Source: Rebecca billardiae RCC1528
Lineage: Eukaryota; Protista; Haptophyta
Reading direction: 5' to 3'
Length of the DNA stretch: 64,000 nt
Assembly (NCBI GenBank): GCA_965240325.2
Contig: OZ251248.1
Coordinates: 496,001 to 560,000, forward strand
Made by a program: the position numbers and the translations under genes. Below are positions 11,003 to 64,000 of this stretch, piece by piece. The first letter of the stretch is position 1. Each line of letters starts with the position of its first letter. The notes under the pieces are model-generated. The model did no database searches and was not told the DNA's origin. It saw only the letters and a program-made list of their open reading frames with translations.

Positions 11003-11008
11003 TTATAG

Positions 11009-16178: not shown

Positions 16179-16382
16179 TTTACTCTGGCGCAGAAAATTT
16201 TCGTCGAAAACTAACGCACTTTGGTCCGCCGCTGGCTCGGCCCCCAAGTCCTAAGTTTTTTCCGCGGATGGCGGGTCGGCGGCTGAGGGTCGGCGGCGGC
16301 CGCCCGGGATGCCGACATCGTCGCGCGAGCTCGGCCCAAGTCTTAAGTGCGGATCGAAATATGTTTTGGGGATGGTCGGCCT

Positions 16383-16690: not shown

Positions 16691-16802
16691 AAGCGAGATC
16701 CGGAAAGCTTCGGCCTTGGATCACTGGTAGTTCTTGGCCGGCTCGCAAGCTTCGGCCTTGGAACTGAGCTTCGGCGGCCGCCCTCGGTTTGTCTTGGCGG
16801 GA

Positions 16803-17047
16803 TCGTAGCGCGCAGTGTATCGAAGTGGCGTCTAAATTTTCGCTTGTGAAAGCATGGTTTTCAGCGCGAAAATCACCGGCATTTGCCAGTCTCGTTTCGG
16901 GTGGCAAACACCGGTGATTTCGGAGGGGCGGGAGGGATGGAGGGTGTGCGCGGATGCGCGAAAATGACCTGCGAGTGCCGGCCATTTTGTGACGGCGCGG
17001 CGGCCGGGGGTAAACTGTCCTGGTGAGTAGGTAATACCTTCTCTCTC
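16803..17047 (-). repeat. Right terminal inverted repeat (245 bp) of the PLV
   Basis: Reverse complement of 3204-3448; ends ...GGTAATACCTTCTCTCTC. Confidence 0.96.
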
Positions 17048-17480
17048 TAACCGAATGTGTCGGGAGGCTGGAAGGTGATGCGTCGCAGTGTCGTGACAGC
17101 CAAGGCCAAGGGCCTCCATCGTCTACCTGATCCTGCAGGTAGTTGCTTCGTGCTGGTACGGCGCTCGAGATCATATCCAAGATCATCTGCAGTCATCCGA
17201 GTGGCAGCTTTCCAGTTCATCAAGCAACTAACCAGTCGAGCTCACACAAATCGGCACTTTACGACCTTTCGCGCCGAGCTCACAAGCTGCTCATCAGTTA
17301 CTGCCAGTCGGCCCCTTGCCTCATCATCAGCAAACGAGGCCCCATCTCCTTCGCCGTCGCGTGCTTCTTTGCTCGTGCTCGCTCGCTCGTCGCTCAACCC
17401 GCCATCCGCCCCTGCAGCCTCCGTTGTGGTTGACGAGCTTGCTGTTGTCAGGCCTGTGAGTGCTATGCTCGCCTGAGCCA

Positions 17481-17633
17481 GGGACCTTGCTGCCACACGC
17501 TGGCGCAGTCTGCGCGCAGCTTTGGCACCGTCGGCTCAGTCGCTCTTCCCGTCATCCAGGGACAAATCCCCACCTCACACAAGTATATATACACATCGAT
17601 TGGCGCCGCTTCAATCTTTGTGCAGGAGGACAC
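17481..17633 (+). repeat. 153-bp direct repeat, copy 2 (right of the PLV)
   Basis: Matches 3030-3182 and is followed immediately by a (TA)n/(TAA)n tract. Confidence 0.95.
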
Positions 17634-17730
17634 TATATATATATCTGACGATATAATAATTATGTATAATATATATATAATTATAATAATAATAATGATA
17701 ATAATAATCGATGCTATGACGATGATGATA
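17634..17730. repeat. AT-rich simple-sequence island
   Basis: TATATATATAT...ATAATAATAATGATAATAATAAT in a GC-rich background. Confidence 0.8.
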
Positions 17731-18209
17731 CGGCGCAGCGCCGAGCGCGCACTATGTCTGCTATTAATATCGATCGGACCTGATGATCGGAGTGATTGAT
17801 GCGTGCTGCGCGCTATATAGCTATAGCACTTATTCGGACAATCAATCGTCAGTCACACCGTGCCGCAGTGATGAGTCACACTCCGCGCGCACGCCACACC
17901 CCCGCACATGCAGCCGCTAGCGGCGCCGCCGGCGGTCACTCTGCGCTGATGCGCAGAATGCAATAACAGTATATGGGGGTAACAGTAGTCGTGCACTCAT
18001 TCCTCGACCTCATCAGGCGGTGAATCGCGCATAGGATCATCGTCAGCAGCGCAGCATACGGGCCGCCGCCGGCCGGGCGGCACCGTCCGGCGGACAGGCG
18101 GACCGAGCCAGCGAGGGGTACGCGCAGAGTCGTCATCTCTCTGGCGGTGGCCGCGTGAGCCGTACCGGCGGTACTGGAACAGCAGCGGCGGCGGCGGCGG
18201 CGGCGGCGC

Positions 18210-23921: not shown

Positions 23922-24077
23922 CGCCGCGGGAGGCCGTCAGAGCAAAGGTAACCGGTGCGGTTGCATTGGTGAGCAAAGCTGAAAGCGGTGATCCGGGCGT
24001 GGCGATCGGCGATCCGGCCGACTGCTCGAGCAGCGGCAGTTAGCCGCCGCCCTGCGCTTTGCAAGCTGCCCGGCGAC

Positions 24078-28820
<4,743 letters not shown>

Positions 28821-31287: not shown

Positions 31288-34200
31288 TCAGCGCGCGGCC
31301 TGCCGCTCGATGGCGAGGACGGCGAGCACCGAGAGCGCGACGGCGCACGGCTCCCAGATGAGCGCGCCCTGCACCTCCGCCACCGCCCAGCTCACGAGCA
31401 GCAGCCGCGTGCGCGCCTCGTCGAGCGAGCGCGAGAGTACGAGCGCGCACGCGGCAGAGCCGCCGAGCACGCACGCGCTCGCGAGCCAGAGGAGGGCTGT
31501 GCGTAGCGCGCGCGACACGCCGGCGCGCGAGCCCGTCGGCTTGGCGGCGCGGAGCGCGCGCGCCGCCTCCGCCTCCGCCGCGGCGCGCGCCACGCGGGCG
31601 CACCACGCCAGCAACTCGTGCAGCTCGAGCTCGTCGCCGCACGCGGCCTCGGCCGAGCGCGCGAGCTCGAGCGAGCGCCTCGCTGACAGCCGCATGCCGG
31701 CCTCGCGCAGCACCGCGCCGACCTCGGCCGCGCCCACCGTCGCGCCCGCGTCGGCCGCGCGCGCCTCGAACGCGCCACGCACGCGCTCGGCCGCGCCCGG
31801 CCGCAGCGAGGGCGGAGGCGCCTTGGAGCGCGCGCGCGACGATGACGGCGTGCGCGCGGACGCGCGCTCGGCGCCGCGCGTCGGCGTCGGCGTCACCACC
31901 GACGCCGCCGACCGCGGCGGCGGCGCCGAGCCCTGCTGCTCGGGGCCCGGCGCCACGCGCTCCGGCTGCGGCGCCGCGGCGGCGCGCTTGGGCGTGACGC
32001 GCAGAGTGCGCGCCGCGGGCGTCGGATCGGGGCGCTGGGGCGGCGCGCCGACGCGCGCCCGCTGAGGGCCGGCGGGCAGCCTCCGCGCGCCGGAGGACGT
32101 GTCCTGGCGCGACGCGCTGCCCTCGTCCACCTCGCCCTGGTCCAGGTCCGGCGGCGGCGGGCGGGAGCGCTGCGGGCTCCCGGGCACGGCCGCGGCGTCG
32201 TCGCGCGGCGCCGGCACGCGCGTGCGCGTCGGCTCGGCCGGCTGCGGCGGCGAGGGCGGCGGCGAGGGCGGCGGCGGCCCGGGCGGCGGCTCCCGCGGCG
32301 CGCCGGCCGTCGACGCGGCTGGCGACGTGTCTGGCGGACGAGGCGGCCCGCGCGCGCTCTCGCCGAGCTGCGAGTCGTCACCCCGGGCAGGCTCGGCGGG
32401 CGTCGCCCAGAAAGGCGCCGCGGCGCGCGCGGCGCCGGGCTGCCCCTCGAAGGGGCCCGGCTGCCGCCCCGCCGCCGCCGCCGAGCCGGCCGCACGGCTG
32501 CTCGTCGCAGAAGAGCCACGAGCGGAGGACGTCGCCGACGGGCGGCGCTTGGCGGTCGCCGGCCGCGCAGCGCCGCCGCTCCCTGACGGGCGGCGCCCCG
32601 AGGCCGGGCGGCCGACCAGCGCGGCGGCGGCGTCGGACGCGGCGCGCGCGGCCGCGCTCGGCGGCCTGCCGCGCCGCGCGGGCGGCGCGCCGCCCTCCGC
32701 CACGTCGCCCTCCGGGTGGATGGCCGCGCCCACCGCGTCGCCGCCCTCGTCGCCGCTGTCGTCGGAGTCCTGGGAGCTGCCCGGCCTGGCGGCGGGCAGC
32801 TCGGGCGTGGCGGCGGGCGGCGGCGGCGGCGGCGCGGCCCACGCGTCCTGCTGCAGCCGCGCGCGCGGCGGCGGCGAGGGGGTTGCCGAGGGCGGCGGCG
32901 TGAGTCCATCCCCGCCCTCGTCGTCTTCGCGCTCGTTGCGCGACAGTGTGCGTGCGCGCATCTGCTGCGCGCGCGCGATCACGACCGATCGCGGCAGGTC
33001 CTGGACGCTCGGCGGCACGCGCGTCGAGCGGCGCCGCGCCGGCGAGCCCGCGGCGGCGGCACCCTCTGCGCTCTGCCGGCGCGGCGGCGCGCGCGTCGGC
33101 GCGACCGAGTCTCCCCGAAGCCTCGAGCTCACGGCAGGCTGTGTGCTCGGGCGCGCCTGCGGGGTCGCGCGAGGCGCGCCCACGCCGCCGCACGCGCCAA
33201 CCCCGCGCGCGAGGTCCTCGCTGCTGCCTCCGGCGTAGACCCGCGAGCCGCCGCCGGCTGCGCCCGCGCCGCCCGCGCCGGCGGTGCCGGAATGCCCGCG
33301 GCCCACGAGCGGAGGCACACTCAGCTCGCCCGCCGCGGGCGCGCCGGCGAGCTGCGCGGCCAGCGACTGTCGGGAGGGGCGCTGCGGGCGCTCCGATGGT
33401 GGCTGCATGGCCGACGGCGCGCCGGCCGCGGCGGTTGGCACTGCTGGCTCCGCCGGCTGGGCCGCGCCACCCGCCGCCTCCGCCACGCCGCCCTCCTCGG
33501 CCGCGCGCGCGCCGTCGGTGCGCCCCCCGGCCTCTGCGCGGGCGCTGTCTGCGCCGTCGGTGCGCCCCCCGGCCTCTGCGCGGGCGCTGTCTCCAAGCTC
33601 ACGCGCCGCCGCTGCGGTGGGCAGCGGCAGCACGCGGTCGCGGCCGCTCGGCACGCTCGCAGGCGCCGCGGCGGCTTCGGCTGCTGCGCCAGCCTCGGGC
33701 GCGGGCGCGGCGGCGTCGACGCGCTCCGCGGCCGCGCCGCCGCCATCGGCTGCAAACCCGCCACGGTCCTGCGCCGCGGCGGGCGGCGCGTCATCGCCTG
33801 CGCTCGGCGTCACGACGGCCGCGCCGCCGCCGCCGTCGGCAGTCGGCGGCGGCGCGAGCCTTGCACCCGAGGACGGCGCGAGGGCGGCGGCGAGGATCGC
33901 GTCGTCACGCGCGCGCGGCTCGCGCACGGCGCGCCACGCGCGCGCCGCGCGCGGCAGCGCGCGCGCGCTCCCGCCCGCGGCCCGGCGCGTCAGCGCCTTC
34001 AGCAGCCACAGCACCGGCTGGGCGAGTGCCGCGCCCGCGGTGGCGGTGAGGAGGACGGCTGCGATCGGCTCGGGGGCGGGGCCGGCGGTGAGGCCGAGGG
34101 CGAGGAGCAGCGTGCACAGCGCGAGCACCAGGGCGGCCGTCGAGAAGAGCGCCGCGCCCACCGTCGCGCGCGGCCGGAGCGCCGTGCTCAGCGCGATGGA

Positions 34201-34627
34201 CTCGGCCGCGCCGCCGTCGGCGTCCGCGGCCGCTTCGCCCGGCCGGCCGCCGCCCGCCGCCGAGCCACCGCCGCCGCCGCGCCAGAGGGCGAGCAGCAGG
34301 AGCTCGTGCTCCAGGGCGAGCGCCACGCTCGCGAACGGCGGCGGCGCTGGCTTCGAGGGCGGCACCGCCAGCTGCTCCGCCCGCCCGCCGCCGCCGCCGC
34401 CGGGCGAGCCGTCGGCGGCGCCGCCGTCGGCGCCACCGTTTGCGTCGGCAGCGGCGTAGGCGGACCCGCCACCCGCCGAGCCGCGCGACTTGGCGCGGCG
34501 CTCGGCGACGAGCGCGGCGCAGGCGCACACGAGCCAGCCGCCCACGAGCGCGACGACGAGCGCGAGCACGGCGATGTTCTCCTCGCCGTCGAGCGCGGCG
34601 GTGCGCACGCCGAGCACTCCGTCGATC

Positions 34628-34665
<38 letters not shown>

Positions 34666-37600
34666 TCCGCTCGCGCCGCCGCCGCCGCTGTCAACGTCGG
34701 GCGACGGGGGCGGCGCGGCGAGCGAGAGCGCGGCGAACTCGGTGAGGTGCGTGCACGCGCAGCGCACGAGGTCCTCGCTCTCCGACACCTCCGCCTCGCA
34801 CCCGCGCGTGCTCCACGCGCCCGCGCCGCCGGCGGCGCGCCCATCCCACCAGCCACACCCGGCCACCAGCGTGCAGGCGGCGCCGTGGTACCATGGGGGT
34901 TGCGCGTCGCACGCGCACGTGCCGTTGACGCACGCGCCGCGGGCGGAGCAGCCGCCCAGCGCGTCGCACGAGCCGTCGGCGCGCGGCGAGGCCGCGCTCG
35001 CGCCGCGCGGCACCTCGCGCGGCAGCGCCAGCCGCACCGGACTGCCGAGTCCGGAGAGGCGCAGCTCCGCGCCCGACGCGGCCGAAGCAATTTTGATCGA
35101 GAGCAGGTGCGACTGCAGGGTCGAAGCGGCGGCGTCGGTCTCGGGGTAGCCGGTGGCGGGGCGCGGCGGCGGCGCGCGGAGGTTGGCGCCGCCGAACGAC
35201 GCGAGCAGCACGTCCACGCCCGCGCCGAGCAGCGCCGCCTCCGCGCCCTCGCCGCCCGCCGCCGCCCGGACTCCGAGCAGCAAATCGCTCGGCAGCTCCA
35301 GCTGAGCGCCCGCGCCGCTCGGGCCGAGAAGGCCGCCGACGGTGGCGCTGGCGCCGAGCAGCGTCGCGCCGGAGGCGTCGAGCGCGTCGGCGTCGAGGCG
35401 CGCCGCCGAGACCGCCACGTCCGCGCTGCGCACGCCGCGCCCCGCCTCGCCCGCGAGCGCGCCGACGAGGAGCGCGCGCGCGAGGCTGTCCGCAACGCTC
35501 GCCGCGGCCGCGGGCTCGGCGATCGTGCGGACGCCTGCGCGGAGGGTGAGGGCGAGTGCCTCGGCGACGGAGGCGGCGGTGGGGTCGTCGACGCCCGTCG
35601 CGCCCGCCGCCTGCGCCGCGATCCCATCGAGCAGCCCGAGCGCCGTGTCCTGCGGCCCGCCCACCAGTAGGGAGCCGCCGCCGCCGCCGCCGTCGCCGTC
35701 GCCGCCGCCGCCCGAGCCGAGCCGCAGCACGCCTGCGACGACTGCGGCCAGCTGGCGGCGCGTGTCCGGCGTGGAGGCGCTGGTGGCGGCGACGTCGGCG
35801 GCGACGCCGAGCATCGCGCCGAGCACGGACCCGTCGGCCGCGCTGCCGTTGCTCGCGCCCGTCGCGTTGGCCGCGGCCCCGCCGGCCGCCTGCAGCGCGC
35901 GCGCGCGGCGCGCGCCGCCGGCCGCGGCGGCGGCCGCCGCCGCCGCGCCGGCGGCGCCGTCACACGTCGCGCTGGCGTTGGGCGGGACGACGGAGGTGAG
36001 CGCGACGAGCATCTGCAGCGCCTGCGCGCCCGAGCCCACCGCCACCGCCACGCCCGCCGCGTCGAGCGCCGCCGACACCTCGTCGCAGCTCAGCGCCTCC
36101 GCGGGCGCGGCCGCGTCGACGGGCGCGGCCGCGCGCGCGGCGCCGCCCCAGTAATCCCACACGGTCGCCCAGACGGTGTGCGCGCCGAGCGGGAGGATGG
36201 CCTGCGCGGCGGCGGCGGAGGAGCGCTCGGTGAGCGGCGACGCGTCGGCGACGCCGCCGCCGCGCGGCGCCAGCTCGAAGCGGTACGCCAGCGGCAGGTC
36301 CTCCGCGTCGTCCGTCCAACCGAGCGCGCTCAGCTCGAACGCCGTCGACAGCGCCACGCCGGCCGCGGGCGAAACCGCCACGGCGCCGCCGTACGGCGCG
36401 CGGTTGATCTGGACGACGAGCTCGGCGAGCGCGGGCTCGGGCGCGTCGGAGAGCTCGACGGTGAGCGCGAACGCGTACGTCGCGCCGGGCGTGAGCACGC
36501 CCGAGCGGAACGCGAGCGAGAGCTGCGCCGCGCCCGTCGTCGTCACCGCGACGCTGTCGTCGAGGTCGAGCGAGGCGTCGGCGCGCAGCCGGCGCGCGCC
36601 GACCAGCTCGGTCGCGCGCCACCGCGCGCTCGCGGTGGCCTCGCCGCTGGAGACGCGCGCGGCGCTCTCGTCGTCGAGCGCGGCGGCGAGCGCGAGCCCG
36701 TCGAGCGCGAGCTCCCACGTCGGGTTGAACTTGAACGCGTCGAGCGGCGCGAGCGCCAGCGTGGGCACGCGCGCGCCCACGACGCCGACGCGCACGCTCG
36801 CCGTCGCGGCCGCGGCCGCGGTGGCGGGCGCGGAGAGGGTGAGGGTGAAGGTGTAGTTGGCGCCGGCGTCGAGCGCGCCCGGCGGCACGACGAGGAGCGG
36901 CCCGTCCAGCGCCGTCCGCGCGCGCAGCGCCGCGGTGGCGCCCGCGCCCTCCTCCTCGCTTCCGCCCTCCGGCCGCACCGCCCACGAAAACGCGAGCGTG
37001 CCGTTGGCGCCGTTGAGAGCGTTCGGATCGTAGCTGGCCGACGCGTCGAGCTCGAAGGGCGCGAGGGAGGAGACGACGCGGTCGCCGCCGGCGAGGACCG
37101 GCTGCAGCGGCAGCGCGAGCACGCGCACCTGCACCACCGCCTCCGACGCCTCGCCCGGCGCCGCGGCCATCTCGGCGCGCGCGCGCAGCTCGTACACTCG
37201 GCCGGGCGTCAGGCTGAACGGAGGCAGCGTGAGGGAGGGCAGCGTGGCGCCGCCGAGCGGCAGCGGCGGCGCGTCGGCGTCGGGCAGCGGCAGGCGTGTC
37301 TCCGCGTCGAGCGTGCGCACGTGCGCCCAGCTGAACAGCACCCTCGCGTCCGAGCCCGCGGGCCAGCACGGCGCGAGCTGCGCGACGGCGCGCAGCGCAA
37401 GCGGCGCGGCCGTGCGCGCGTCGCGCGCCGCCGGCCCGTCGATGCGCACGCGCGGCTCGGCGCCGCCGCCGCGCGACACCTCCCACGCGGCGAGCGGCGA
37501 GTCCTCGCCGAGCAGCGTGGAGCGCACGCGCAGGAGGAAGCGGAAGCGCGCGCCCACGAGCTCGCTCACCGCGAGCACCGCCGCGCCCGAGCCGTCCAGC

Positions 37601-40600
37601 GCGGCGAGCCGGGCGTTGAGCTCGTCTGCAAAGTCGGTCGCGGCCGGGTCGGCGCGCCACTCGTAGGCGAGCGGCACGATGCCGCCGCCGGAGGAGGACG
37701 AGGCGTCGAGGCGGAGGGTCTCGCCGGGGCACGCGGAGATCTGCGTGGGGCCGGAGAGCCGCGCGACGGGCGACGGGCACGCCTCCTCGCCGCACGGCGC
37801 GTCCGCGTCGAGCGTCGCGTTCACGCCGACCGCCGCGAGCTCGGGCGCGCAGCCGTCGCCGCACGCGAGCGGTCGGACCGCGCCGTCGAGGATGGCGATG
37901 GTGGCGCCGGGCGCGAGCGCGGTGGCGGCGGAGAGCTCGACGACGGCGGTGGAGTCGTCGAGCCAGTGGCACAGCGGCGGCAGCGCCGACGCGCCGCGCA
38001 CCAGCCCCACCGACTGCGGCGCGAGCAGCCGCGCGCACGGCTGAGAGCCCGACATGCGCGCGCGGTCGGTCGGCTGCGCGTCAAACTCGAGGACGAGCTC
38101 GGTCGCGCGCTCGCCGAGCCGCGCGCGCAGCAGCTGCGGCGCGCGCAGCCCGACGAACGTGAACTCGGGCGGCGCGGCGCCGCCCGGCGCGGGGGCGAAC
38201 TGCTGGCCGTTGAGCGCGACGCTCACCGGCAGCGCCGCGCCCGCCGTGCCCCAGGGGGTGAGCACCGCGATCTCGCGCGCCGAGATCGACAGCGGCGGCG
38301 GCGCGACGGCGGCGCCAAAGCGCACGCGCGCGAGCGAGCCGAGCGCCGCCGCGCCGCCGAGCGCGCCGAAGCCGGCGCCGCGCACGGTGACGAGCTCGCC
38401 GCCGAGGGCGAGGCCGCTGCTCGGCTGTACGGCCGTTACGACCGGCTCCTCATACACGGCGAACGGCGCGGCGAGCGCGCTCGGCGTCGCGCCGCCGTCG
38501 AGGCTCAGCCCGACGCGCAGCGTGGCGGGCGCGCTCAGCGGCGGCGTGACGCAGCGCGCGCGCGCGCTGCCGTCGGCCGCGCCGGGCAGCATCGCCGCCG
38601 CCGCCCAGCAGCCCTCGCCGTCGAGCACGGCGCCGTCGGCGCCGACGCGCACGCAGCACAGCCGGCCGGCGCCAAAGTCGGCGAACCCGTCGCCGAGCAG
38701 CGTGAGCGCCGTCCCGCCGCGCGTCGGGCCCGCGGGCGGCGTGAGCGCGCGCACGCGCACGGCCTCGGCCGCGTACAGCTGGAAGGCGCGCGACGCGGCG
38801 TCGGCGAACCGCGACCGCACGGTGTTGCGCCCGGCGTTGAGCGAGAGCTCGACGGTGTAGCTGCCGGCGAGCGCGCCGGCAGGCAGCGCGCACTCGGCCG
38901 TCGTCGCGTCCAGCACGCGCCCGGCCGAGACGAGCGGCTCGGCCGCCGCCGCGGCGGCGGCGGCGGCGGCGGCGGCGGGCTCGAACACGCAGCGCGTGCC
39001 GCCGAGCTCGACGAAGCCCGTGCCGCGCACGGTGAGCGCGGGCTCCGAGGGCGGCGCGCCGAGGGGCGCGCCGCGCGGGCCGAGCGAGTCCGTGACCGCC
39101 GAGAAGAGAACGAATGTGCCGTCCGCCTGCGTGAGGCTCTGCCCGTCGAGCGAGACCTCGAGCGCCACCGCCTCCGCCGGCGCGTACGGCGGCACGTACG
39201 GGAACACGCACTCGAGCTCCGAGCCGGCCGCGCCGTCCGACAGGCTGGCCGGGACGGTGCCGTAGCCGCCGAACGAGCAGAGCAGGCCGCCGTAGTCGGC
39301 GAGGCCCTCGCCGCCGACGCGCACGAGCGTGCCGCCCGCCGAGCCGAGCGGCGCGCCCGGCGGATCGACCGCGCCGATCGACACCGCGCTCAGGTCGTAG
39401 TAGGCGAAGTCGGCGGTGACGAGGATCGGCTCGGTCTCCTCGTCGGCGGCGGACGCGCCGAGCGCGAGCAGCTCGAGGCTGAGCGTCGCGACGAGCGCGC
39501 TCGGCGGCGCGGCGCACGCGATGCGCGCGGCCGAGACGGAGGCCGCGCGCGTGCGCACCCCGCCCGCGCCGCCCCACTGGCACCGGATCCGATCCGGCGC
39601 GGCCGCCGCCAGCTCGAAGCCCGCGCCTGCGATGCTCACATTCGCGCCCGCGCCGCCGATCGGAAGGCCGCGCGGGGAGACCGAGGCGACGGTGGCGTAC
39701 GCGAGCGGGTTGGCCGGCAGGGTCACTGAGAGGGCGGGCGCGCGCGAGAAGCGCGCGGGCGGGAGCAGCGCGGCGCGGCCGGCCGTCGCGTTCTCCGCCG
39801 CGCCCGCCGACGCGGCGAAGCGGTAGCACAGGACGAAGCCCGCGCCGAGCTGCGCGAACGTGAAGCTCGCCGCGCCGTCCACGCCGACCGTGCCGTTGGC
39901 GACGGCGGCGGCGGCGTCGCACGGCGCCGCGCCGCCGCCCGCCGCTCCGCCGGGCGGCAGCCAGAACGCCCAGTCGCCCGCGCGCACGCCCGCGCCGCCG
40001 AAGCGCACCGCCTCCGCCTCGAGCACCACCGCGATCACCGTCGCGGGAGACGTGATCTCGAGCGCGTCGAGATTGAAATCCGGGTAGAGCGCAAAGCGCG
40101 CGCCGGCCGCGCCGAACCGGTAACACAGCCGCAGCCGCTCGGCGCCGCCGCCCGCGCGCAGCGCAAACGTCGCGGCGCCGCCGGCGAGCGTGACGACGCC
40201 GCCGCGCGCGGCGCGCGGCGCCGCGCTCGCGCAGTCCGTCGCGCCGGGCGGCGCCCAGTACGCCGCGTCGCCGTCCGCCACGCCGCTCCCTTCGAAGCCG
40301 AGCGTGACGGCCGTGCCGACGGGCGCGCGCGCCGGGCCGACGAGTCGCGCGAGCGCTCGCACGAGCACCGTCACGTTGGGGAAGAAGGCAAAGGGCTCGG
40401 CGGCGAAGCGGTAGCAGAGGCCGGCGGGCGCGGCGCCGGCGCCGAGCGCCGCCGCCGCCGTGGGCGTGAACGAGCCGGTCTGCGCGGTGCCGACGGCCCA
40501 GAGCCCGCCGAACGCCGCGCCCGCCGCGCCGCTCGCGCCCGAGCCGTCGGCCGCGCACGCGGACGCGGTGGGAGCCCAGTGCGCCGCGTCGCGCGTGCTC

Positions 40601-52600: not shown

Positions 52601-55600
52601 TGTGGCGAAGGCGACGGTGGCGGCGACGGCGGCGGCAACGGCGGCGGCACTGGCGGAGGCGCCAATGGCGGCCGTGACGGCGGAGGCGACGGCGGTGGGG
52701 ACGGCGGCGGGGGCGACGGTGGCGGAAGTGGCGGCGGCGATGGAGGAGGCGACGGCGGCGGGCTCGGTGGCGACGGTGGCGGGAACGGCACCGTGCGAGG
52801 AGGCGGCGGGGGCGCTGGAGGCGGTGACGGCGGCGGCGATGGCGCCGGGCTCGGCGGCGGTGAAGGCGGCGGCGCGGGCGGCGGCGGGCTCGGCGGCGGT
52901 GAAGGCGGCAGGCTGGGCGGCGGGCTCGGCGGCGGGCTCGGCGGTGGGCTCGGAGGCGGGCTCGGCGAGGCCGCAGGCGGTGGCGACGGTGGGGGCAGCG
53001 GCGACTGCGCGGGCGGTGGCGATGGAGGCGGCTGTGGCGACGGTGACGGTGGCAACGATGGCGGCGGTGATGGCGGCGGCACTGGCGGAGGCGGCAACGG
53101 CGGCGGCGACGGCGGAGGCGACGGCGGCGGCGTCGGCGGCGGGGGCGACGGTGGCGGAAGCGGCGGCGGCGACGGCGGAGGCGACGGCGGCGGGCTCGGT
53201 GGCGACGGTGGCGGGAACGGTGCCGTGCGAGGAGGCGGCGGGGGCGCCGGAGGAGGTGACGGCGGCGGCGATGGCGCAGGGCTCGGCGGCGGTGAAGGCG
53301 GCGGCGCGGGCGGCGGCGGGCTCGGCGGCGGTGAAGGCGGCAGGCTGGGCGGTGGGCTCGGCGGCGGGCTCGGCGGTGGGCTCGGAGGCGGGCTCGGCGA
53401 GGCCGCAGGCGGTGGCGACGGTGGGGGCAGCGGCGGCTGCGCGGGCGGTGGCGATGGTGGCGGCTGTGGCGACGGTGACGGTGGCAACGATGGCGGCGGT
53501 GATGGCGGCGGCACTGGCGGAGGCGGCAACGGCGGCGGCGACGGCGGAGGCGACGGCGGCGGCGTCGGCGGCGGGGGCGACGGTGGCGGAAGCGGCGGCG
53601 GCGACGGCGGAGGCGACGGCGGCGGGCTCGGTGGCGACGGTGGCGGGTACGGTGCCGTGCGAGGAGGCGGCGGGGGCGCCGGAGGAGGTGACGGCGGCGG
53701 CGATGGCGCAGGGCTCGGCGGCGGTGAAGGCGGCGGCGCGGGCGGCGGCGGGCTCGGCGGCGGTGAAGGCGGCAGGCTGGGCGGTGGGCTCGGCGGCGGG
53801 CTCGGCGGTGGGCTCGGAGGCGGGCTCGGCGAGGCCGCAGGCGGTGGCGACGGTGGGGGCAGCGGCGGCTGCGCGGGCGGTGGCGATGGTGGCGGCTGTG
53901 GCGAAGGCGACGGTGGCGGCGATGGCGGCGGCGATGGCGGCGGCACTGGCGGAGGCGGCAACGGCGGCGGCGACGGCGGAGGCGACGGCGGTGGCGTCGG
54001 CGGCGAGGGCGACGGTGGCGGAAGTGGCGGCGGCGATGGCGGAGGCGACGGCGGCGGGCTCGGTGGAGACGGTGGCGGGAGCGGTGCCGTGCGAGGAGGC
54101 GGCGGGGGCGCCGGAGGTGGTGACGGCGGCGGCGATGGCGCCGGGCTCGGCGGCGGTGAAGGCGGCGGCGCGGGCGGCGGCGGGCTCGGCGGCGGTGAAG
54201 GCGGCAGGCTGGGCGGTGGGCTCGGTGGCGGGCTCGGCGGTGGGCTCGGAGGCGGGCTCGGTGAAGCCGCAGGCGGTGGCGACGGTGGGGGCAGTGGCGG
54301 CTGCGCGGGCGGTGGCGATGGTGGCGGCTGTGGCGAAGGCGACGGTGGCGGCGATGGCGGCGGCGATGGCGGCGGCACTGGCGGAGGCGGCAACGGCGGC
54401 GGCGACGGCGGAGGCGACGGCGGTGGCGTCGGCGGCGAGGGCGACGGTGGCGGAAGTGGCGGCGGCGATGGCGGAGGCGACGGCGGCGGGCTCGGTGGAG
54501 ACGGTGGCGGGAGCGGTGCCGTGCGAGGAGGCGGCGGGGGCGCCGGAGGTGGTGACGGCGGCGGCGATGGCGCCGGGCTCGGCGGCGGTGAAGGCGGCGG
54601 CGCGGGCGGCGGCGGGCTCGGCGGCGGTGAAGGCGGCAGGCTGGGCGGCGGGCTCGGCGGCGGGCTCGGCGGTGGGCTCGGAGGCGGGCTCGGCGAGGCC
54701 GCAGGCGGTGGCGACGGTGGGGGCAGTGGCGGCTGCGCGGGCGGTGGCGATGGCGGCGGCTGTGGCGACGGTGACGGTGGCGGCGATGGCGGCGGTGATG
54801 GCGGCGGCACTGGCGGAGGCGGCAACGGCGGCGGCGACGGCGGAGGCGACGGCGGTGGCGTCGGCGGCGAGGGCGACGGTGGCGGAAGTGGCGGCGGCGA
54901 TGGCGGAGGCGACGGCGGCGGGCTCGGTGGCGACGGTGGCGGGAACGGTGCCGTGCGAGGAGGCGGCGGGGGCGCTGGAGGTGGTGACGGCGGCGGCGAT
55001 GGCACCGGGCTCGGCGGCGGTGAAGGCGGCGGCGCGGGCGGCGGCGGGCTTGGCGGCGGTGAAGGCGGCAGGCTCGGCGGCGGGCTGGGCGGCGGGCTCG
55101 GCGGTGGGCTCGGAGGCGGGCTCGGCGAGGCCGCAGGCGGTGGCGACGGTGGGGGCAGCGGCGGCTGCGCGGGCGGTGGCGATGGTGGCGGCTGTGGCGA
55201 CGGCGACGGTGGCGGCGATGGCGGCGGCGATGGCGGCGGCACTGGCGGAGGCGCCAATGGCGGCCGTGACGGCGGAGGCGACGGCGGTGGCGACGGCGGC
55301 GGGGGCGACGGTGGCGGAAGTGGCGGCGGCGATGGCGGAGGCGACGGCGGCGGGCTCGGTGGCGACGGTGGCGGGAACGGCACCGTGCGAGGAGGCGGTG
55401 GGGGCGCTGGAGGTGGTGACGGCGGCGGCGATGGCGCCGGGCTCGGCGGCGGTGAAGGCGGCGGCGCGGGCGGCGGCGGGCTCGGCGGCGGTGAAGGCGG
55501 CAGGCTGGGCGGCGGGCTCGGTGGCGGGCTCGGCGGTGGGCTCGGAGGCGGGCTCGGCGAGGCCGCAGGCGGTGGCGACGGTGGGGGCAGCGGCGGCTGC

Positions 55601-58600
55601 GCGGGCGGTGGCGATGGTGGCGGCTGTGGCGACGGCGACGGTGGCGGCGATGGCGGCGGCGATGGCGGCGGCACTGGCGGAGGCGCCAATGGCGGCCGTG
55701 ACGGCGGAGGCGACGGCGGTGGCGACGGCGGTGGGGACGGCGGCGGGGGCGACGGTGGCGGAAGTGGCGGCGGCGATGGAGGAGGCGACGGCGGCGGGCT
55801 CGGTGGCGACGGTGGCGGGAACGGTGCCGTGCGAGGAGGCGGCGGGGGCGCCGGAGGTGGCGACGGCGGCGGCGATGGCGCCGGGCTCGGCGGCGGTGAA
55901 GGCGGCGGCGCGGGCGGCGGCGGGCTTGGCGGCGGTGAAGGCGGCAGGCTGGGCGGCGGGCTCGGCGGCGGGCTCGGCGGTGGGCTCGGAGGCGGGCTCG
56001 GCGAGGCCGCAGGCGGTGGCGACGGTGGGGGCAGCGGCGGCTGCGCGGGCGGTGGCGATGGAGGCGGCTGTGGCGACGGCGACGGTGGCGGCGATGGCGG
56101 CGGTGATGGCGGCGGCACTGGCGGAGGCGCCAATGGCGGCGGCGACGGCGGAGGCGACGGCGGCGGCGTCGGCGGCGGGGGCGACGGTGGCGGAAGCGGC
56201 GGCGGCGACGGCGGAGGCGACGGCGGCGGGCTCGGTGGCGACGGTGGCGGGTACGGTGCCGTGCGAGGAGGCGGCGGGGGCGCCGGAGGTGGTGACGGCG
56301 GCGGCGATGGGGCCGGGCTCGGCGGCGGTGAAGGCGGCGGCGCGGGCGGCGGCGGGCTCGGCGGCGGGCTGGGGGGCGGGCTGGGGGGTAAGCCAGGCGG
56401 TGGCGAGGGCGGCGGTGTTGGTGGCGTCGATGGCGGTGGAGATGGCGGCGGCGACGGCGGCGGCGATGGCGGCGGCGATGGCGGCGCAGCGGGTGGCTCG
56501 AACGGAGCGCCAAGGCTAGGCGGTGGCGACGGCGGTGGTGACGGGGGCGCGCTGGGCGGCGGCGATGGCGGCGGGGCAGGCGGGTCCGCCGGCGGCTGTG
56601 ATGGCGGCGGCGATGGTGGAGGCGAGGGCGGCGGTGAGGGCGGCGGCTGAGGCGGCGGCGAGGGCGGCGGCGAGGGCGGCGGCGAGGGTGGCGGAGCAGG
56701 CGGTGGCGAGGGCGGTGGCGAGGGCGGTGGCGAGGGCGGTGGCGAGGGCGGCGGCGAGGGCGGAGACGGCGGCGGGAAGGGCGCTGCACGTGGAGGCGGG
56801 GGCGGTGCCGGCGGCGGACTTGGTGGAGGCGACGGCGGTGGTCTAGGGGGTGGCGAAGGCGGCGGTGTCGGCGGCGGCGGGCTCGGCGGCGGGCTCGGCG
56901 GCGGGATGGGTGGTGAAGACGGGGGTGGCGACGGCGGTGGCTTAGGTGGCGGTACCGGGGGACGGCGAGGCGGCGGCGAGGGAGGCGGTGACGGAGGCGG
57001 TTGCGGCGGCTGCGCTGGTGGGGGGGACGGTGGCGGCGACGGCGACTCTGCCAGTGGTGGCGGAGATGGCGGCGGGGAGGGTGGCGGTTGCGGCGGCTGG
57101 GCAGGCGGCGGCGACGGCGGCGGCGAAGGCGGCGGGGAGGGCGGAGGCGAAGGCGGTGGGCTCGGTGGCAACGGCGGAGGTGACGGCGGCGGCGCCGGCG
57201 GCGGCGATGGCGGCGGTGCTGGCGGTGGTGACGGCGGCGGCTGTGGAGGCGACAGCGGCGGCGGGCTCGGCGGCGGGCTCGGCGGTGGGCTCGGCGGTGA
57301 CGATGGCGGCGGCGACGGGGGCGGCCGCGGCAGAGGCGACGGCGGCGGCGACGGCGGCGGGCTCGGCGGCGGGCTGGGCGGGGGCGACGGCGGGGGCGAT
57401 GGCGGAGGCGCAGGTGGCGGTGACGGTGGCGGGCTGGGTGGGGGCGTGGGCGGCACGCCCGGCGGTGGGCTAGGTGGCGGGCTCGGTGGCGGCGCTGGCG
57501 GTGGTGGGCTTGGGGGCGGTGCCGGCGGCATCGCTGGAGGAGGCGACGGCGGAGGCAAGGGCGGTGGCGAAGGGGGTGGCGATGGCGGCGGCGACGGCGG
57601 GGGGCTCGGTGGCGAGGGCGGCGGGAAGGGAAAAGCGCGCGGCGGCGGCGGCGGGGCGGGCGGCGGCGACGGCGGCGGCGATGGCGGTGGGAATGGCGGT
57701 GGGAGCGGAGGCGGCGATGGCGGTGGCGGCGACGGTGGCGGCGATGGCGGCGGCAGGGGAGGTGGGCTGGGCGGAGGGCTCGGAGGCGGCAGCGGTGGTG
57801 GCGATGGTGGCGGCCGTGGCTGCGGCGAGGGTGGCGGCGAGGGCGGTGGCGAGGGCGGCGGCGACGGAGGCGGCGAGGGCGGCGGCGAGGGCGGCGGCGA
57901 GGGCGGCGGCGACGGAGGCGGCGAGGGCGGCGGCGAGGGCGGCGGCGAGGGCGGCGGCGACGGAGGCGGCGACGGAGGCGGCGAGGGCGGCGGCGAGGGC
58001 GGCGGCGACGGAGGTGGCGACGGAGGCGGCTGGGGCGGCGGCGAGGGCGGAGGCGATGGCGGCGGCAGGGGCGCGGGGCTCGGCGGCGGACTCGGCGGCG
58101 GCGAAGGCGGTGGCTGCGGCGGCGTGGCTGGCGGTGGGCTGGGCGGCGGCGACGGCGGTGGGCTCGGAGGTGGCGTCGGCGGTGCAAGAGGTGGCGGCGA
58201 GGGCGGCGGCGTGGGCGGTGGCGGCGACGGCGGTGGGCTTGGCGGAGGGCTCGGCGGCGGTGAAGGCGGTGGCACGGGCGATGGCGACGGCGGGGGGCTC
58301 GGCGGGGGACTTGGCGGCGCAGACGGTGGCGGCGAGGGCGGAGGACGGGGCGGTGGGCTTGGCGGTGGGAGCGGTGGCGGCGGGGAGGGCGGCGGCGAGG
58401 GTGGCAGGGACGGCGGAGGGCTTGGCGGCGGCGCGGGTGGCGGTGGGCTCGGCGGCGGCGTGGGCGGCGGTGACGGCGGTAGCGCGGGCGGCGGCGACGG
58501 TGGCGGCGACGGTGGCGGCGACGGTGGCGGCGAAGGCGGGGGATGCGGCGGCGGCGGCGAGGGCGGTGGGCTCGGCGGAGGACTTGGCGGTGGTGACGGC

Positions 58601-61600
58601 GGCGGGAATGGCGACGGGGAGGGCGGCGGGCTCGGCGGCGGGCTTGGAGGAGGGCTGGGCGGCGGGGAGGGCGGAGGGCCTGGCGGCGGGCTGGGCGGAG
58701 GGCTGGGCGGTGGCGAGGGCGGCGGCGAGGGTGGCGGCGCGGGAGGCGGCGGGCTCGGCGGTGGCGCGGGCGGTGGGCTCGGCGGCGGTGCCGGCGGTGG
58801 CGGGCTCGGCGGCGGCAATGGCGGCGGCGATGGTGGTGGGGACGGCGGGGGCGACGGAGGTGGCGACGGGGGCGGTCGCGGCGGTGGTGGCGACGGCGGA
58901 GGGCTGGGCGGCGGGCTGGGAGGCGGGTGCGGTGGCGGCGGCGATGGAGGCGGAAGCGGCGGTGGCCGGGGAGGCGGGAATGGCGGGGGAGGCGACGGCG
59001 GGGGGCTTGGCGGCGGGCTGGGCGGCGGGCTTGGCGGTGGCGACGGCGGCAAGCTCGGCGGCGGGCTGGGCGGAGGGCGCGGCGGCGGCGGCGATGGCGG
59101 TGGGGTCGGTGGCGGGTTCGGCGGTGGCGATGGCGGCGGGCTTGGCGGCGACAGGGGCGGGGGCGACGGCGGCGGCGAAGGTGGCGGCGACGGTGGCGGA
59201 AGCGGCGGCGGGCTCGGTGGCGGGCGTGGCGGCGGCGGAGACGGCGGCGGCTGCGGAGGCGGGCTTGGAGGCGGAAACGGCGGCGGCGGGCTTGGCGGAG
59301 GCGACGGCGGGGGAATCGGTGGAGGGCTCGGAGGTGGGATCGGCGGCGGTGATGGAGGTGGGGCCGGCGGCGGAGGGCTCGGCGGCGGGCTCGGCGGCGG
59401 GCTCGGTGGCGGGCTTGGTGGCGGCGGGCTGGGCGGCGGGCTTGGTGGCGGACTCGGCGGCGGGCTCGGCGGCGGGCGTGGCGGTGGGCTGGGCGGCGGC
59501 GACGGCGGCGGAGTCGGAGGCGGGGGGCTCGGTGGAGGGCGCGGGGGCGGGCTGGGCGGCGGCTGTGGGGGTGGGCTCGGCGGTGGGCTCGGCGGCGGGC
59601 TCGGCGGGGGAGCCGGGGGCGGTGGACTCGGAGGAGGGCTCGGCGGTGGGCTCGGCGGTGGATGCGGCGGCGGCGGGCTCGGCGGCGGGCTCGGCGGCGG
59701 GCGTGGCGGCGGGCTCGGCGGCGGGCTCGGCGGCGGGCTCGGCGGCGGGCGTGGCGGCGGGCGTGGCGGCGGGCTCGGCGGCGGGCTCGGCGGCGGGCTC
59801 GGCGGCGGTCGCGGCGGCGGGCTCGGCGGCGGGCTCGGCGGCGGGCTCGGCGGCGGGCTCGGCGGCGGCGGGCTCGGCGGCGGGCTCGGTGGCGGGCTCG
59901 GTGGTGGCCGTGGCGGTGGGCTAGGCGGTGGACTTGGGGGTGGTGAAGGCGGCGGGGCCGGCGGTGGCGGGCTGGGCGGTGGGCTCGGTGGCGGGCTGGG
60001 CGGCGGGCTCGGTGGCGGCGGGCTCGGCGGTGGGCTCGGCGGTGGGCTCGGCGGTGGGCTCGGCGGTGGACCGGGCGGTGGGCTTGGGGGTGGCGATGGC
60101 GGTGGAGTCGGAGGCGGCGGGCTCGGCGGCGGAGCGGGCGGCGGGCTCGGCGGCGGAGCGGGCGGCGGAGGGCTGGGTGGCGGCGATGGCGGCGGCGACG
60201 GTGGCGGGGACGGTGGTGGCGGCGATGGAGGCGGGCTCGGCGGCGGTACTGGCGGCGGCGACGGCGGTGGGCTAGGCGGTGGAAGCGGCGGGGGGCTTGG
60301 CGGTGGAAGCGGCGGGGGAGGCGATGGCGGCGGACTGGGAGGCGGGCGTGGTGGCGGGGACGGCGGCGGGGACGGCGGTGGGGACGGCGGTGGACTTGGT
60401 GGCGGGCTTGGTGGCGGCGGAGAAGGCGGCGGGCTCGGTGGCGGCGAAGGCGGTGGGCTGGGCGGCGGCGATGGTGGAGGCGCCGGCGGCGGGCTCGGCG
60501 GGGGCGAGGGTGGCGGCGGGCTCGGCGGTGGGCTCGGAGGCGGGCTTGGTGGTGGGCTAGGCGGTGGTGATGGCGGCGGGCTCGGCGGTGGGCTGGGCGG
60601 CGGGGCCGGTGGCGGGCTCGGCGGTGGGCTTGGCGGAGGAGAGGGCGGCGGGGCCGGCGGAGGCGGACTTGGCGGCGGGCTAGGGGGCGGGCTCGGTGGC
60701 GGGCTCGGTGGCGGGCTCGGTGGTGGCGTCGGCGGGGGGCTCGGTGGCGGGCTCGGTGGCGGGCTCGGTGGTGGCGTCGGCGGGGGGCTCGGAGGCGGGC
60801 TGGGGGGCGGGCTTGGTGGCGGCGTCGGAGGTGGGCTCGGCGGTGGGCTTGGCGGAGGGCTCGGCGGTGCGCTTGGTGGCGGGCTTGGCGGTGGGCTTGG
60901 CGGCGGTGGGCTGGGCGGCGGGCTCGGGGGAGGCAAGGGTGGAGGGCTTGGCGGCGGGCCCGGGGGCGGACTTGGCGGCGGGCTCGGGGGCGGGCTCGGA
61001 GGCGGGCTCGGAGGCGGGCTGGGTGGCGGCGACGGAGGTGGGCTGGGCGGTGGAGGGCTGGGCGGTGGGCTGGGCGGTGGGCTCGGTGGTGGCGAAGGCG
61101 GCGGGCTGGGCGGCGGCAGGGGAGGCGGGCTGGGAGGCGGGCTGGGCGGCGGGGTGGGCGGCGGCGAGGGCGGCGGGCTGGGCGGCGGGCTTGGAGGCGG
61201 GCCGGGCGGCGGGCTCGGCGGAGGGCTGGGCGGCGGACTCGGCGGAGGTGGGCTTGGCGGCGGGCTTGGCGGAGGGCTGGGAGGCGGCCTCGGAGGTGGG
61301 CTGGGCGGTGGCGAGGGAGGCGGGCTCGGCGGCGGGCTAGGTGGCGGGCTGGGCGGTGGGCTGGGAGGCGGCGACGGCGGCGGGCTCGGCGGCGGGCTCG
61401 GGGGAGGCGGGCTCGGCGGTGGGCTCGGAGGCGGCGACGGAGGCGGGCTCGGCGGTGGAGATGGCGGTGGTGACGGCGGTGGACTCGGCGGCGGGCTCGG
61501 CGGCGGGCTCGGCGGCGGGCTCGGCGGCGGGCTTGGAGGCGGGCTTGGCGGCGGCGGGCTCGGCGGCGGGCTCGGCGGTGGCGAGGGTGGTGGGCTCGGC

Positions 61601-64000
61601 GGCGGCGCTGGCGGCGGGCTTGGCGGTGGGCCCGGCGGTGGGCTCGGCGGCGGACTGGGCGGCGGGCTCGGCGGCGGCGAAGGCGGTGGGCTGGGTGGCG
61701 GCGGGCTGGGTGGTGGGCTGGGTGGCGGGCTGGGCGGCGGTGACGGCGGCGGGCTGGGCGGTGGGCTGGGCGGCGGGCTGGGCGGTGGACTGGGCGGCGG
61801 GCTGGGTGGTGGGCTGGGCGGCGGTGACGGGGGCGGGCTCGGCGGTGGGCTAGGAGGCGGGCTCGGTGGAGGGCTTGGAGGCGGGCTTGGCGGAGGTGGG
61901 CTTGGCGGCGGACTCGGCGGCGGGCCGGGAGGCGGGCTGGGCGGTGGGCTGGGCGGTGGCGACGGTGGCGGGCTGGGGGGCGGAGCCGGCGGTGGCGAGG
62001 GTGGCGGGCTGGGCGGCGGTGACGGTGGAGGCGACGGCGGTGGGCTCGGCGGCGGTGGGCTTGGCGGCGGGCTCGGCGGTGGGCTCGGCGGCGGGCTCGG
62101 CGGCGGGCTCGGCGGCGGTGACGGAGGAGGCGATGGCGGGGGACTCGGAGGCGGGCTTGGCGGTGGCGAAGGCGGTGGGCTTGGCGGCGGGTTCGGCGGA
62201 GGGCTAGGTGGCGGGCTTGGTGGCGGGCTCGGCGGCGGGCTTGGGGGGGGCGGGCTCGGTGGAGGGCTGGGCGGCGGGCTGGGCGGAGGCGACGGTGGCG
62301 GGACCGGCGGTGGCGAAGGAGGCGGACTTGGTGGTGGACTGGGCGGTGGGCTCGGCGGGGGGCTCGGCGGTGGTGTCGGCGGCGGGCTTGGCGGCGGTGA
62401 GGGTGGCGGGCTCGGTGGCGGAGACGGCGGTGGCGATGGAGGTGGGCTCGGTGGCGGGCTCGGCGGCGGGCTCGGCGGCGGGCTCGGCGGCGGCGGGCTG
62501 GGCGGCGGGCTGGGCGGCGGGCTGGGCGGCGGGCTCGGCGGCGGGCGCGGCGGAGGGCTTGGTGGAGGGCTTGGAGGCGGACTCGGCGGCGGGCTCGGCG
62601 GCGGGCTCGGCGGCGGGCTCGGCGGCGGACTTGGCGGAGGTGGGCTTGGCGGCGGTGACGGTGGCGGGCTCGGCGGTGGCGACGGCGGTGGCGACGGCGG
62701 TGGGCTCGGCGGCGGGCTTGGAGGCGGGCTCGGTGGCGGGCTCGGCGGCGGAGGGCTGGGTGGCGGGCTGGGTGGCGGGCTGGGCGGTGGGCTGGGCGGC
62801 GGACTCGGTGGCGGGCTCGGCGGAGGGCTGGGCGGCGGGCTCGGCGGCGGGCTCGGCGGCGGCAGCGGCGGCGGGCTCGGCGGCGGGCTCGGCGGCGGGC
62901 TCGGCGGTGGGCTCGGTGGTGGGCTCGGAGGTGGGCTCGGAGGCGGTGGGCTGGGTGGCGGGCTGGGCGGCGGGCTGGGCGGAGGCGACGGTGGCGGGAC
63001 CGGCGGTGGCGAGGGGGGCGGACTTGGTGGTGGAATGGGCGGTGGGCTCGGCGGCGGGCTCGGCGGTGGTGACGGCGGCGGACTGGGCGGCGGTGATGGT
63101 GGCGGGCTCGGTGGTGGTGACGGTGGCGGACTCGGCGGCGGTGATGGTGGCGGGCTCGGTGGTGGTGACGGTGGCGGACTCGGCGGCGGTGATGGTGGCG
63201 GGCTCGGTGGTGGTGACGGTGGCGGACTGGGCGGTGGCGGGCTTGGCGGCGGACTCGGCGGCGGCGACGGCGGAGGCGACGGCGGAGGACTCGGAGGAGG
63301 GCTCGGAGGGGGTGACGGCGGCGGCGATGGCGGCGGGCTGGGCGGGGGCGACGGCGGCGGGCTGGGAGGCGGACTCGGTGGCGGGCTCGGCGGCGGGCTT
63401 GGCGGCGGGCTTGGCGGCGGGCTTGGCGGAGGTGGGCTTGGCGGCGGTGACGGCGGCGGGCTCGGCGGCGGAGACGGCGGTGGCGACGGCGGTGGGCTCG
63501 GTGGCGGGCTCGGAGGCGGGCTCGGCGGCGGGCTCGGCGGCGGAGGGCTGGGTGGCGGGCTGGGCGGCGGGCTGGGCGGCGGGCTTGGCGGCGGACTCGG
63601 TGGTGGGCTCGGCGGTGGGCTGGGCGGCGGGCTCGGTGGCGGGCTCGGCGGCGGCAACGGTGGCGGGCTGGGCGGTGGGCTCGGCGGCGGGCTCGGCGGT
63701 GGGCTCGGCGGTGGGCTCGGAGGGGGGCTCGGAGGCGGTGGGCTGGGTGGCGGGCTGGGCGGCGGGCTGGGCGGAGGCGACGGTGGCGGGATCGGCGGTG
63801 GCGAAGGAGGCGGGCTTGGTGGTGGACTGGGCGGCGGGCTCGGCGGCGGGCTCGGCGGTGGTGACGGCGGTGGGCTTGGCGGCGGTGAGGGTGGCGGGCT
63901 CGGCGGCGGAGACGGCGGTGGCGATGGAGGTGGGCTCGGTGGCGGGCTTGGCGGCGGGCTCGGCGGCGGGCTCGGCGGCGGAGGGCTGGGCGGCGGGCTG
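31288..64000 (-). CDS. Giant polycystin-1/REJ-GPS-like membrane protein with extensin-like Ser-Pro shaft (5' end beyond the window, >10,900 aa)
   Basis: One stop-free frame to the window edge. Order: SP3 repeats, SEA-like segment, 12 LCY repeats, 5 IPT/TIG, REJ (INRAPYGG..V.P..G.AL.T.F...A.GW.DD.EDLPL.Y.F), EGF-like, GPS (CGWWD..WSTRGC..CACTHLTEF), ~5 TM ending in IWEP as in PKD1 TM5. Confidence 0.9.
44350..46130 (-). repeat. Coding tandem repeat, 174/183-bp units (58-61 aa, RTEPF marker), ~11 copies
   Basis: GGAACGGCTCCGTGCG at 44358, 44541, 44715, 44889, 45072, 45246, 45420, 45594, 45768, 45942; a variant at 46116. Confidence 0.9.
47150..56370 (-). repeat. Coding tandem repeat, 432-bp unit (144 aa, RT[AV]P[FYL] marker), ~21-22 copies
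   Basis: Marker recurs from 47208 to 56256 every 432 bp, with one 396-bp and one 444-bp variant. Confidence 0.93.

Follow-up and report, generated by a model that had tools for sequence, protein, structure and literature searches.

A giant open frame of the haptophyte Rebecca billardiae that may encode a micrometre-scale polyproline fibre on a REJ-GAIN membrane base

Comparison with described rod and REJ-GAIN proteins

The axial protein of the mastigonemes of Chlamydomonas reinhardtii, MST3, is a single polypeptide of 8,572 amino acids (PMC11015965). It has a signal peptide, a free N-terminal polyproline-II (PPII) helix, 42 Pro-rich ruler repeats, Ig-like domains and a long cytosolic tail, and its anchor is a PKD2-like channel domain that lacks S1 and is completed by SIP (PMC11015965). 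MST3 also has five C-type lectin domains, and its P13/P11(XXP)3 motifs bind MST1 (PMC11015965). At 0.31 nm per residue, the 429 residues of the free PPII helix have a predicted length of 133 nm compared with a measured 146 nm; free PPII helices thus reach over hundreds of nanometres, and one molecule can make a hair close to a micrometre in length (PMC11015965). Here, a 64,000-nt stretch of the genome of Rebecca billardiae RCC1528 (Haptophyta; GenBank assembly GCA_965240325.2, contig OZ251248.1, positions 496,001 to 560,000) is analysed. This stretch, G000:C32:496001-560000 in a genome of 72 Mb in 41 contigs, is referred to as the window. Its minus strand carries most of a giant open frame for a proline rod on a REJ-GAIN membrane base, and the protein, if expressed, most probably forms a surface or flagellar fibre of a single molecule.

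The window protein shares with MST3 a signal-peptide-like segment, a free N-terminal poly-Pro stretch, a Pro-rich repeat array, Ig-like domains and a polycystin-type anchor. In contrast to MST3, this anchor consists of REJ, GAIN and five helices, with no channel domain, and lectins are absent. Pro runs in the rod do not exceed seven residues, so P13/P11 motifs do not occur, and the 144-aa and 58-aa repeat units carry other motifs. On these three absences (PKD2-like domain, P13/P11 motifs, lectins) an MST3 ortholog is ruled out. No sequence relationship between the two is shown and the organisms are probably from different supergroups; the Chlamydomonas proteins are probably analogies of the window gene and not relatives. 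A first reading of this DNA, made from the sequence alone, had presented a rod and a polycystin-like anchor in one polypeptide as new. This architecture had already been published for MST3, the protein on which the 0.31 nm per residue adopted in that reading was used and checked (PMC11015965). What is notable about the window protein within its own family is the length, the absence of a head and the stripped signalling motifs.

Polycystin-1, PKD1 and PKDREJ resemble the window protein in having REJ, then GAIN with the GPS cleavage motif HL/T (the slash marks the point of cleavage), then the first membrane helix. PKD1 has five helices beyond its PKD domain (PMC11015965). They precede the channel-like part, and the window gene also has about five, a likeness by count. 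However, neither PLAT between helices 1 and 2 nor the TOP/PKD channel half is present, about 5 helices stand against 11, LRR, WSC and C-type lectin domains are missing, and PKD Ig repeats give a sub-threshold hint only. EF-hand and IQ-type cytosolic modules belong to the algal family and not to PKD1. The sequence-only reading had called the protein polycystin-1-like, which holds for the REJ-GAIN front half and does not extend to the rest of the base, where neither PLAT, PKD_channel nor any other Pfam match follows the GPS. A full polycystin-1 is ruled out by the lack of PLAT and channel and by the count of about five helices. The sea-urchin proteins suREJ1 and suREJ2 are REJ-module proteins with one or two membrane helices and no channel half, and are a precedent for channel-less REJ proteins. 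They differ from the window protein in size (~1,400-1,500 aa), in their EGF and C-type lectin heads and in having no proline rod.

Two further groups are similar in part. Adhesion G-protein-coupled receptors (GPCRs) have the GAIN fold that is the best structural match, and a large adhesive ectodomain non-covalently joined to a membrane stub; the window gene, however, lacks a seven-transmembrane (7TM) domain, and its five helices fall into groups of 3 + 2 with a disordered loop in between. Plant and volvocine extensins, pherophorins and sexual agglutinins share Ser-Pro3/4, the classic hydroxyproline-arabinoside motif of rigid rods, but they are much shorter and either soluble or bound to the wall, whereas the window protein is integral in the membrane. 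Cross-linking extensins carry Tyr motifs; the window rod has 7 Tyr in 11,832 residues and hence no Tyr cross-link motif. The literature searched contained no REJ-GAIN protein on a proline rod, no report of a REJ domain in a haptophyte and no paper on pavlovophyte flagellar hairs.

Gene extent and the proline rod

On the minus strand, positions 31288-63999 of the window form a frame of 10,903 codons in which the sole stop is the terminal one, in agreement with the earlier proposal of one uninterrupted frame of more than 32.7 kb from extensin-type repeats to a membrane anchor. When the adjoining G000:C32:560001-590000 is added, the frame grows to 16,357 codons (~49 kb), and the same 16,357-aa frame was returned by a REJ profile search around the REJ domain of the gene. 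Within the window, residues 1 to ~6,570 of the translation are Pro-rich; the other ~4,330 are Ala/Gly/Leu-rich and non-repetitive. The features of the locus are summarized in Table 1.

Table 1. Features of the giant open frame and of its product (window positions unless another coordinate system is given)
Feature	Position	Strand	Basis or remark
Full open frame	Window-equivalent 31291-80361 (G000:C32:576361); whole locus G000:C32:527288-576361	-	Extended translation
Part of the 16,357-codon frame within the window	31288..64000	-	Stop at 31288-31290
Signal-peptide-like hydrophobic segment	C32:575798-575857 (outside the window)	-	Hydrophobicity; small-residue cleavage-type site at its end
Rod zones 1-2, (SPPP)n with occasional SPPPP	56383..64000; zone 1 on to ~79797	-	Repeat analysis
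Rod zone 3, 432-nt (144-aa) Pro-rich unit, ~22 copies	46975..56382	-	Neighbours mostly 0.93-0.98 identical
Rod zone 4, 174-nt (58-aa) unit, 10.5 copies	44317..46147	-	Repeat analysis
Globular insert, ~120 aa, between rod and second Pro-rich linker	43924..44280	-	Without family match
Second Pro-rich linker, ~130 aa	43537..43923	-	Composition
105-aa two-Cys repeat, ~11 tandem copies	39739..43209	-	Tiling and alignment
IPT/TIG array, 4 matched stretches	37255..39744	-	Pfam TIG, 7.6e-21 and 3.9e-24
REJ domain	36088..37242	-	PF02010, 1.8e-35 and 5.3e-36
GAIN, helical subdomain then beta-sandwich	34714..36087	-	Pfam and AlphaFold2 model
GPS	34726-34857	-	PF01825, 4.5e-10
Putative cleavage motif CACTHL/T (His-Leu-Thr)	34741-34749	-	Sequence
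Membrane helix 1, reached via poly-Gly linker	34501..34581	-	Hydrophobicity
Membrane helices 2 and 3	33991..34164	-	Hydrophobicity
Disordered, presumably cytosolic linker, rich in Ala/Gly/Arg/Pro/Ser	31810..33912	-	Composition
Conserved C-terminal module: degenerate EF-hand pair, then helices 4 and 5	31291..31800	-	Paralog alignment
Membrane helices 4 and 5	31435-31494 and 31309-31365	-	Hydrophobicity

At this locus the lack of stops has little weight by itself, because GC content is 80-87% across the giant gene (73.4% in the whole window) and stops are likewise missing from two further frames of the rod. The non-repeat part of ~4,350 codons is more telling: this frame has 0 stops there, whereas the other five have as many as 12 in 600 codons. 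The GC content of third codon positions (GC3) in this part is 0.92-0.98 compared with 0.62-0.77 at second positions (GC2), which is strong coding periodicity; GC3 reaches 0.96-0.98 in the extracellular domains, and a finer periodicity scan found a weaker signal only inside the disordered cytosolic linker. At the other end, the first ~165 codons of the frame have low GC3 and look untranslated. The signal-like hydrophobic segment is directly followed by QPSPSPPPS and then by unbroken SPPP repeats; since these repeats start so close to the segment, no head domain is present. Downstream of the stop, no channel exons were found, and the next features are an unknown open reading frame (ORF) and an opposite-strand calpain gene. 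Further downstream exons are ruled out, as the C-terminal module aligns to paralog ends and the next ORFs are unrelated. Taken on its sequence features, the locus is a protein-coding gene, intact as assembled and without a detectable intron.

The rod spans residues 189-12,020 of the full frame, i.e. 11,832 residues of which 73% are Pro and 20% Ser. Its Pro runs include 2,334 of Pro3 and 207 of Pro4, and the longest is 7; the rod also has 26 Lys, no Cys and the 7 Tyr mentioned above. Within the window, the ~6,570 rod residues are built of SPPP/SPPPP (SP3/SP4) units, with 66-75% Pro and 15-23% Ser. The distal zone comprises ~7,000 residues of (SPPP)n with a DNA identity at 12-nt lag of only ~0.74 (~26% divergence), and it holds one block of ~6 near-identical 696-nt higher-order units. 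Only ~1.5% of the residues of zone 1 are other than Ser or Pro. Zone 2 is a less regular transition at the proximal end of the SPPP stretch and leads into the 144-aa units. Among the Pro codons of the rod, CCG accounts for 0.62, CCA for ~0.2, and CCC and CCT for ~0.08 each.

No frameshift occurs in the 35.5 kb of rod. Its divergence is confined to synonymous positions, which indicates that selection acts on the protein. No exact DNA duplicate in the rod is longer than 830 nt, and the rod is therefore not assembly stutter. Codon periodicity, synonymous-only scatter and the absence of frameshifts together favour a rod that is truly coding. With 0.31 nm for each residue, its length would be ~3.7 micrometres. 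Genome-wide, at least 54 loci match PF13640, a prolyl-4-hydroxylase-type 2-oxoglutarate-Fe(II) (2OG-Fe(II)) oxygenase domain. This number is large for 72 Mb and fits heavy use of hydroxyproline.

Ectodomain, membrane base and gene family

As the sequence-only reading had it, Ig-like arrays, REJ, GAIN/GPS and an anchor lie in one frame with the rod: Pfam matches REJ (1.8e-35), TIG (7.6e-21) and GPS (4.5e-10), and a hydrophobic helix follows the GPS. Between rod and GAIN, the globular insert ends in a Cys-bracketed motif, GC.D....S.DP.A..DDGSC, and looks like a short disulfide-closed module; against Pfam the insert, taken as 126 aa, gave sub-threshold DUF matches only. The 105-aa repeats that follow the second Pro-rich linker were shown by tiling, whereas self-BLAST of the whole segment showed none. 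Their signature is GVGV..GD.A.W ... LCYRF, with G.G...D.A.W and LCY invariant, and the repeat has two Cys. Neither a profile search against PDB sequences nor Pfam on each copy gave a match, and a protein word search with the insert and repeat region returned low-complexity Pro-rich matches only. An AlphaFold2 model built from the alignment of the copies is a seven-strand beta-sandwich with a mean pLDDT of 83. Foldseek against PDB found only weak Ig-like/macroglobulin-type matches to this model (E above 0.07). The best Atlas neighbour is an unnamed, mostly haptophyte cluster (TM 0.73, root-mean-square deviation 2.0 Å), and feature-based neighbour clusters are likewise mostly haptophyte. The repeat is thus predicted from the model to be an unannotated Ig-like beta-sandwich. 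In the TIG region, Pfam gave a weak hint of a PKD domain below the cut-off. Lectin domains were not found in the ectodomain, nor was any head domain ahead of the rod.

The GPS of the GAIN domain matches that of ADGRB2 by sequence (4.4e-5). An AlphaFold2 model of 566 residues through the first membrane helix was built from an alignment with 15 paralogs and P0001, the relative described below, and shows a helical subdomain, a beta-sandwich and a long helix. The top 12 Foldseek matches to this model are all adhesion-GPCR GAIN domains (E 5e-8 to 3e-3, probability 1.0). In the same alignment, all family-invariant Cys/Trp and HLT positions are retained in the window gene. With the autoproteolysis motif intact, cleavage is predicted. 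About five hydrophobic helices lie beyond the GPS, 3 + 2 around a disordered stretch of about 700-800 residues. Pfam gave no match on the 1,150 post-GPS residues even at E<=5, and no 7tm match follows the GAIN domain. PLAT is found at only 2 loci genome-wide, neither on the contig of the window gene. A search of the genome counted at least 30 PKD_channel loci, none of them in the contig region of the window gene. One PKD_channel match, G000:C16:881490-881921 (-), lies inside a 6,448-codon frame and may mark an MST3-like giant with a channel domain.

The window gene belongs to a large family. A REJ profile search of the genome found 103 places at ~90 loci, all inside open frames of ~1,200-21,000 codons, most of them >2,000. 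The last 170 residues of the window gene match ~40 of the REJ loci in the same open frame, ~4.3 kb downstream of REJ. With a 300-aa SPPP query, rods were found in-frame with REJ or the C-terminal module at 20 or more other loci, always on the N-terminal side; paralogs were counted in this census by agreement in open-frame size and coordinates. The combination of rod and base thus recurs and is kept in the family, and this again speaks for a coding rod. Long frames with SPPP rods also occur at G000:C30:213951-214904 (-) (23,065 codons), C17:391476-392171 (+) (20,156 codons), C25:28024-52533 (+) (15,074 codons) and C37:39235-95970 (-) (21,132 codons), and among these four REJ was seen only in the last.

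The membrane bases of 16 paralogs were aligned. In a typical base, a conserved stalk leads from the GPS to helix 1. An IQ-like basic box and a DHSLLG...AELAQ box come next, ahead of helices 2 and 3, and a disordered loop of variable sequence then leads to a canonical EF-hand pair, helices 4 and 5 and a conserved ~35-aa tail. In paralog L023, the EF-hand pair is matched by Pfam at 8.8e-12. The window gene keeps the helices and the order of modules. However, poly-Gly takes the place of the conserved stalk, and the IQ-like and DHSLLG boxes normally upstream of helices 2 and 3 are gone. Its EF-hand region has no Pfam match at E<=1 and its loops lack acidic ligands. The stop comes directly after helix 5 where paralogs have the ~35-aa tail, and another long member, L036, ends there too. 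The window gene is thus unusual in its family in being headless, very long and devoid of the IQ-like box, EF-hand calcium ligands and C-terminal tail. The missing head and stripped base point to a fibre-like structural specialisation, or else to relaxed constraint on the cytosolic side. A protein word search with the TIG-REJ-GPS region found one true relative, P0001, and one weak one. P0001 (3,179 aa; L020, ENA ERZ4290864, NODE_3211, 9,708 nt, GC 74%) has 40% identity over >1,800 residues; the similarity spans TIG, REJ, GAIN and helices 1-3, and P0001 retains IQ-like and DHSLLG-type boxes.

Readings of the locus and its surroundings

Good evidence for the gene and its architecture comes from the sequence and the predicted fold. 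The reading that we hold with moderate confidence is that this is a real, intact gene for a micrometre-scale surface or flagellar fibre, structural and not signalling, whose expression we infer. The order of parts would be a signal-like segment, the rod, the insert, ~11 Ig-like sandwiches, 4 TIG, REJ, GAIN and 5 helices split 3 + 2. After secretion, the prolines would be hydroxylated and glycosylated as in other hydroxyproline-rich glycoproteins, and the rod would form a PPII filament of up to ~3.7 micrometres that projects from the plasma or flagellar membrane. The molecule could serve as a single-molecule hair, fibre or spacer, with a free N-terminal poly-Pro tip that would resist aminopeptidases. 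Its distal two-thirds, pure SPPP, would be the exposed rod, while the proximal 144-aa and 58-aa units may serve partner proteins as a ruler, following the principle put forward for MST3. Cleavage in GAIN would leave a non-covalent, force-limited joint between a 15,200-residue fibre and a membrane stub. The loss of the conserved stalk, the IQ-like box, the ligands of the EF hands and the C-terminal tail suggests a structural and not a signalling specialisation. Pavlovophyte flagella carry fine non-tubular hairs.

If expressed as assembled, the gene would be among the longest single-exon genes and its product among the longest rod-shaped proteins proposed, with a rod length comparable to the cell itself. 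The MST3 principle, in which a polyproline molecule is both hair and ruler, would then extend to another anchor and probably to another eukaryotic supergroup. Moreover, in a family of ~90 genes the REJ-GAIN module can occur with no channel half at all, which bears on the evolutionary assembly of polycystin-1. A bolder proposal, which is doubtful at present, is that a chromist alga builds its "simple" (non-tubular) hairs or its surface fibrils from products of this family, each hair being a single glycosylated polyproline molecule of several micrometres with a self-cleaved GAIN joint that would give way under load. The family would then represent a polycystin-1 split in two, its REJ-GAIN-5TM half pairing in trans with separate PKD2-type channels, and the headless, motif-stripped member described here would be its purely structural end.

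Several points weigh against the fibre. The hydroxylation, glycosylation, GPS cleavage and localisation of the protein are all features that we infer, and the 2OG oxygenase family PF13640 is not specific to prolyl hydroxylases. The closest in-frame ATG lies 68 codons ahead of the hydrophobic core in a stretch of low GC3. The assembly may have slightly too many or too few of the near-identical 696-nt and 432-nt units. Finally, the loss of the cytosolic motifs and the tail could equally mean decay.

The protein could instead be a working mechano- or adhesion receptor, in which tension on the rod would release the N-terminal fragment at the GPS and leave an exposed stub to signal via the membrane base, possibly with a PKD2-type channel from a separate gene. 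The intact GAIN with HL/T and all invariant positions would suit such a function, as would the IQ-like box and canonical EF-hand pair on the cytosolic side of typical family members and the PKD_channel loci, at least 30, elsewhere in the genome. However, it is precisely the window gene that has neither the IQ-like box nor the EF-hand ligands, the conserved post-GPS stalk nor the C-terminal tail. It also has no ligand-binding head domain, and no channel gene is linked to it. The loss of Ca2+/calmodulin-type motifs on the cytosolic side weakens the sensor reading, and we consider a receptor unlikely.

The same losses bear on whether the gene is a decaying or silent paralog, its frame open only because high GC makes stops rare and the repeats are young. 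Degenerate cytosolic motifs, a tail that is missing in comparison with 14 of the 16 paralogs, weaker codon periodicity in parts of the cytosolic linker, the lack of an in-frame ATG near the signal segment and the two other open rod frames would all be expected of such a relic. Decay is nevertheless improbable. A frame kept open by composition does not account for 0 stops in 4,350 non-repeat codons when other frames have up to 12 per 600, or for GC3 of 0.96-0.98 in the extracellular domains. The 35.5-kb rod has no frameshift despite ~26% divergence between neighbouring units, almost wholly synonymous, and all invariant GAIN residues are retained.

That the length of the rod is an artefact of an assembly-expanded repeat, or that splicing takes out much of the rod and leaves a far shorter protein, is very improbable: the locus is repeat-rich and its ~6 near-identical 696-nt and ~22 432-nt units (0.93-0.98) are open to miscounting, but most of the rod is an imperfect repeat (identity 0.74 at 12-nt lag) whose 830-nt longest duplicate is well inside long-read length, the assembly holds 72 Mb in 41 contigs, at least 20 paralogs have the rod-before-REJ layout in one frame, and an intron spanning the rod would need to begin directly after the signal peptide.

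The surroundings of the giant gene include other features. Genes here look intron-poor; the pavlovophyte Diacronema lutheri is comparable, with 73.25% GC and 45% of its genes in a single exon. The calpain gene (window 23988-28064, +; Peptidase_C2 1.5e-47 and Calpain_III) is on the opposite strand and separated from the downstream end of the giant gene by ~3 kb. GC content falls from 70-80% in the flanks to 56-60% in an island at positions 2000-18000 of the window. One ORF of this island (11904-16247, -) encodes a protein-primed family-B DNA polymerase with an endonuclease VII domain, and another (4087-6207, -) encodes Laminin_G_3. The island looks like an integrated Polinton-like virus.

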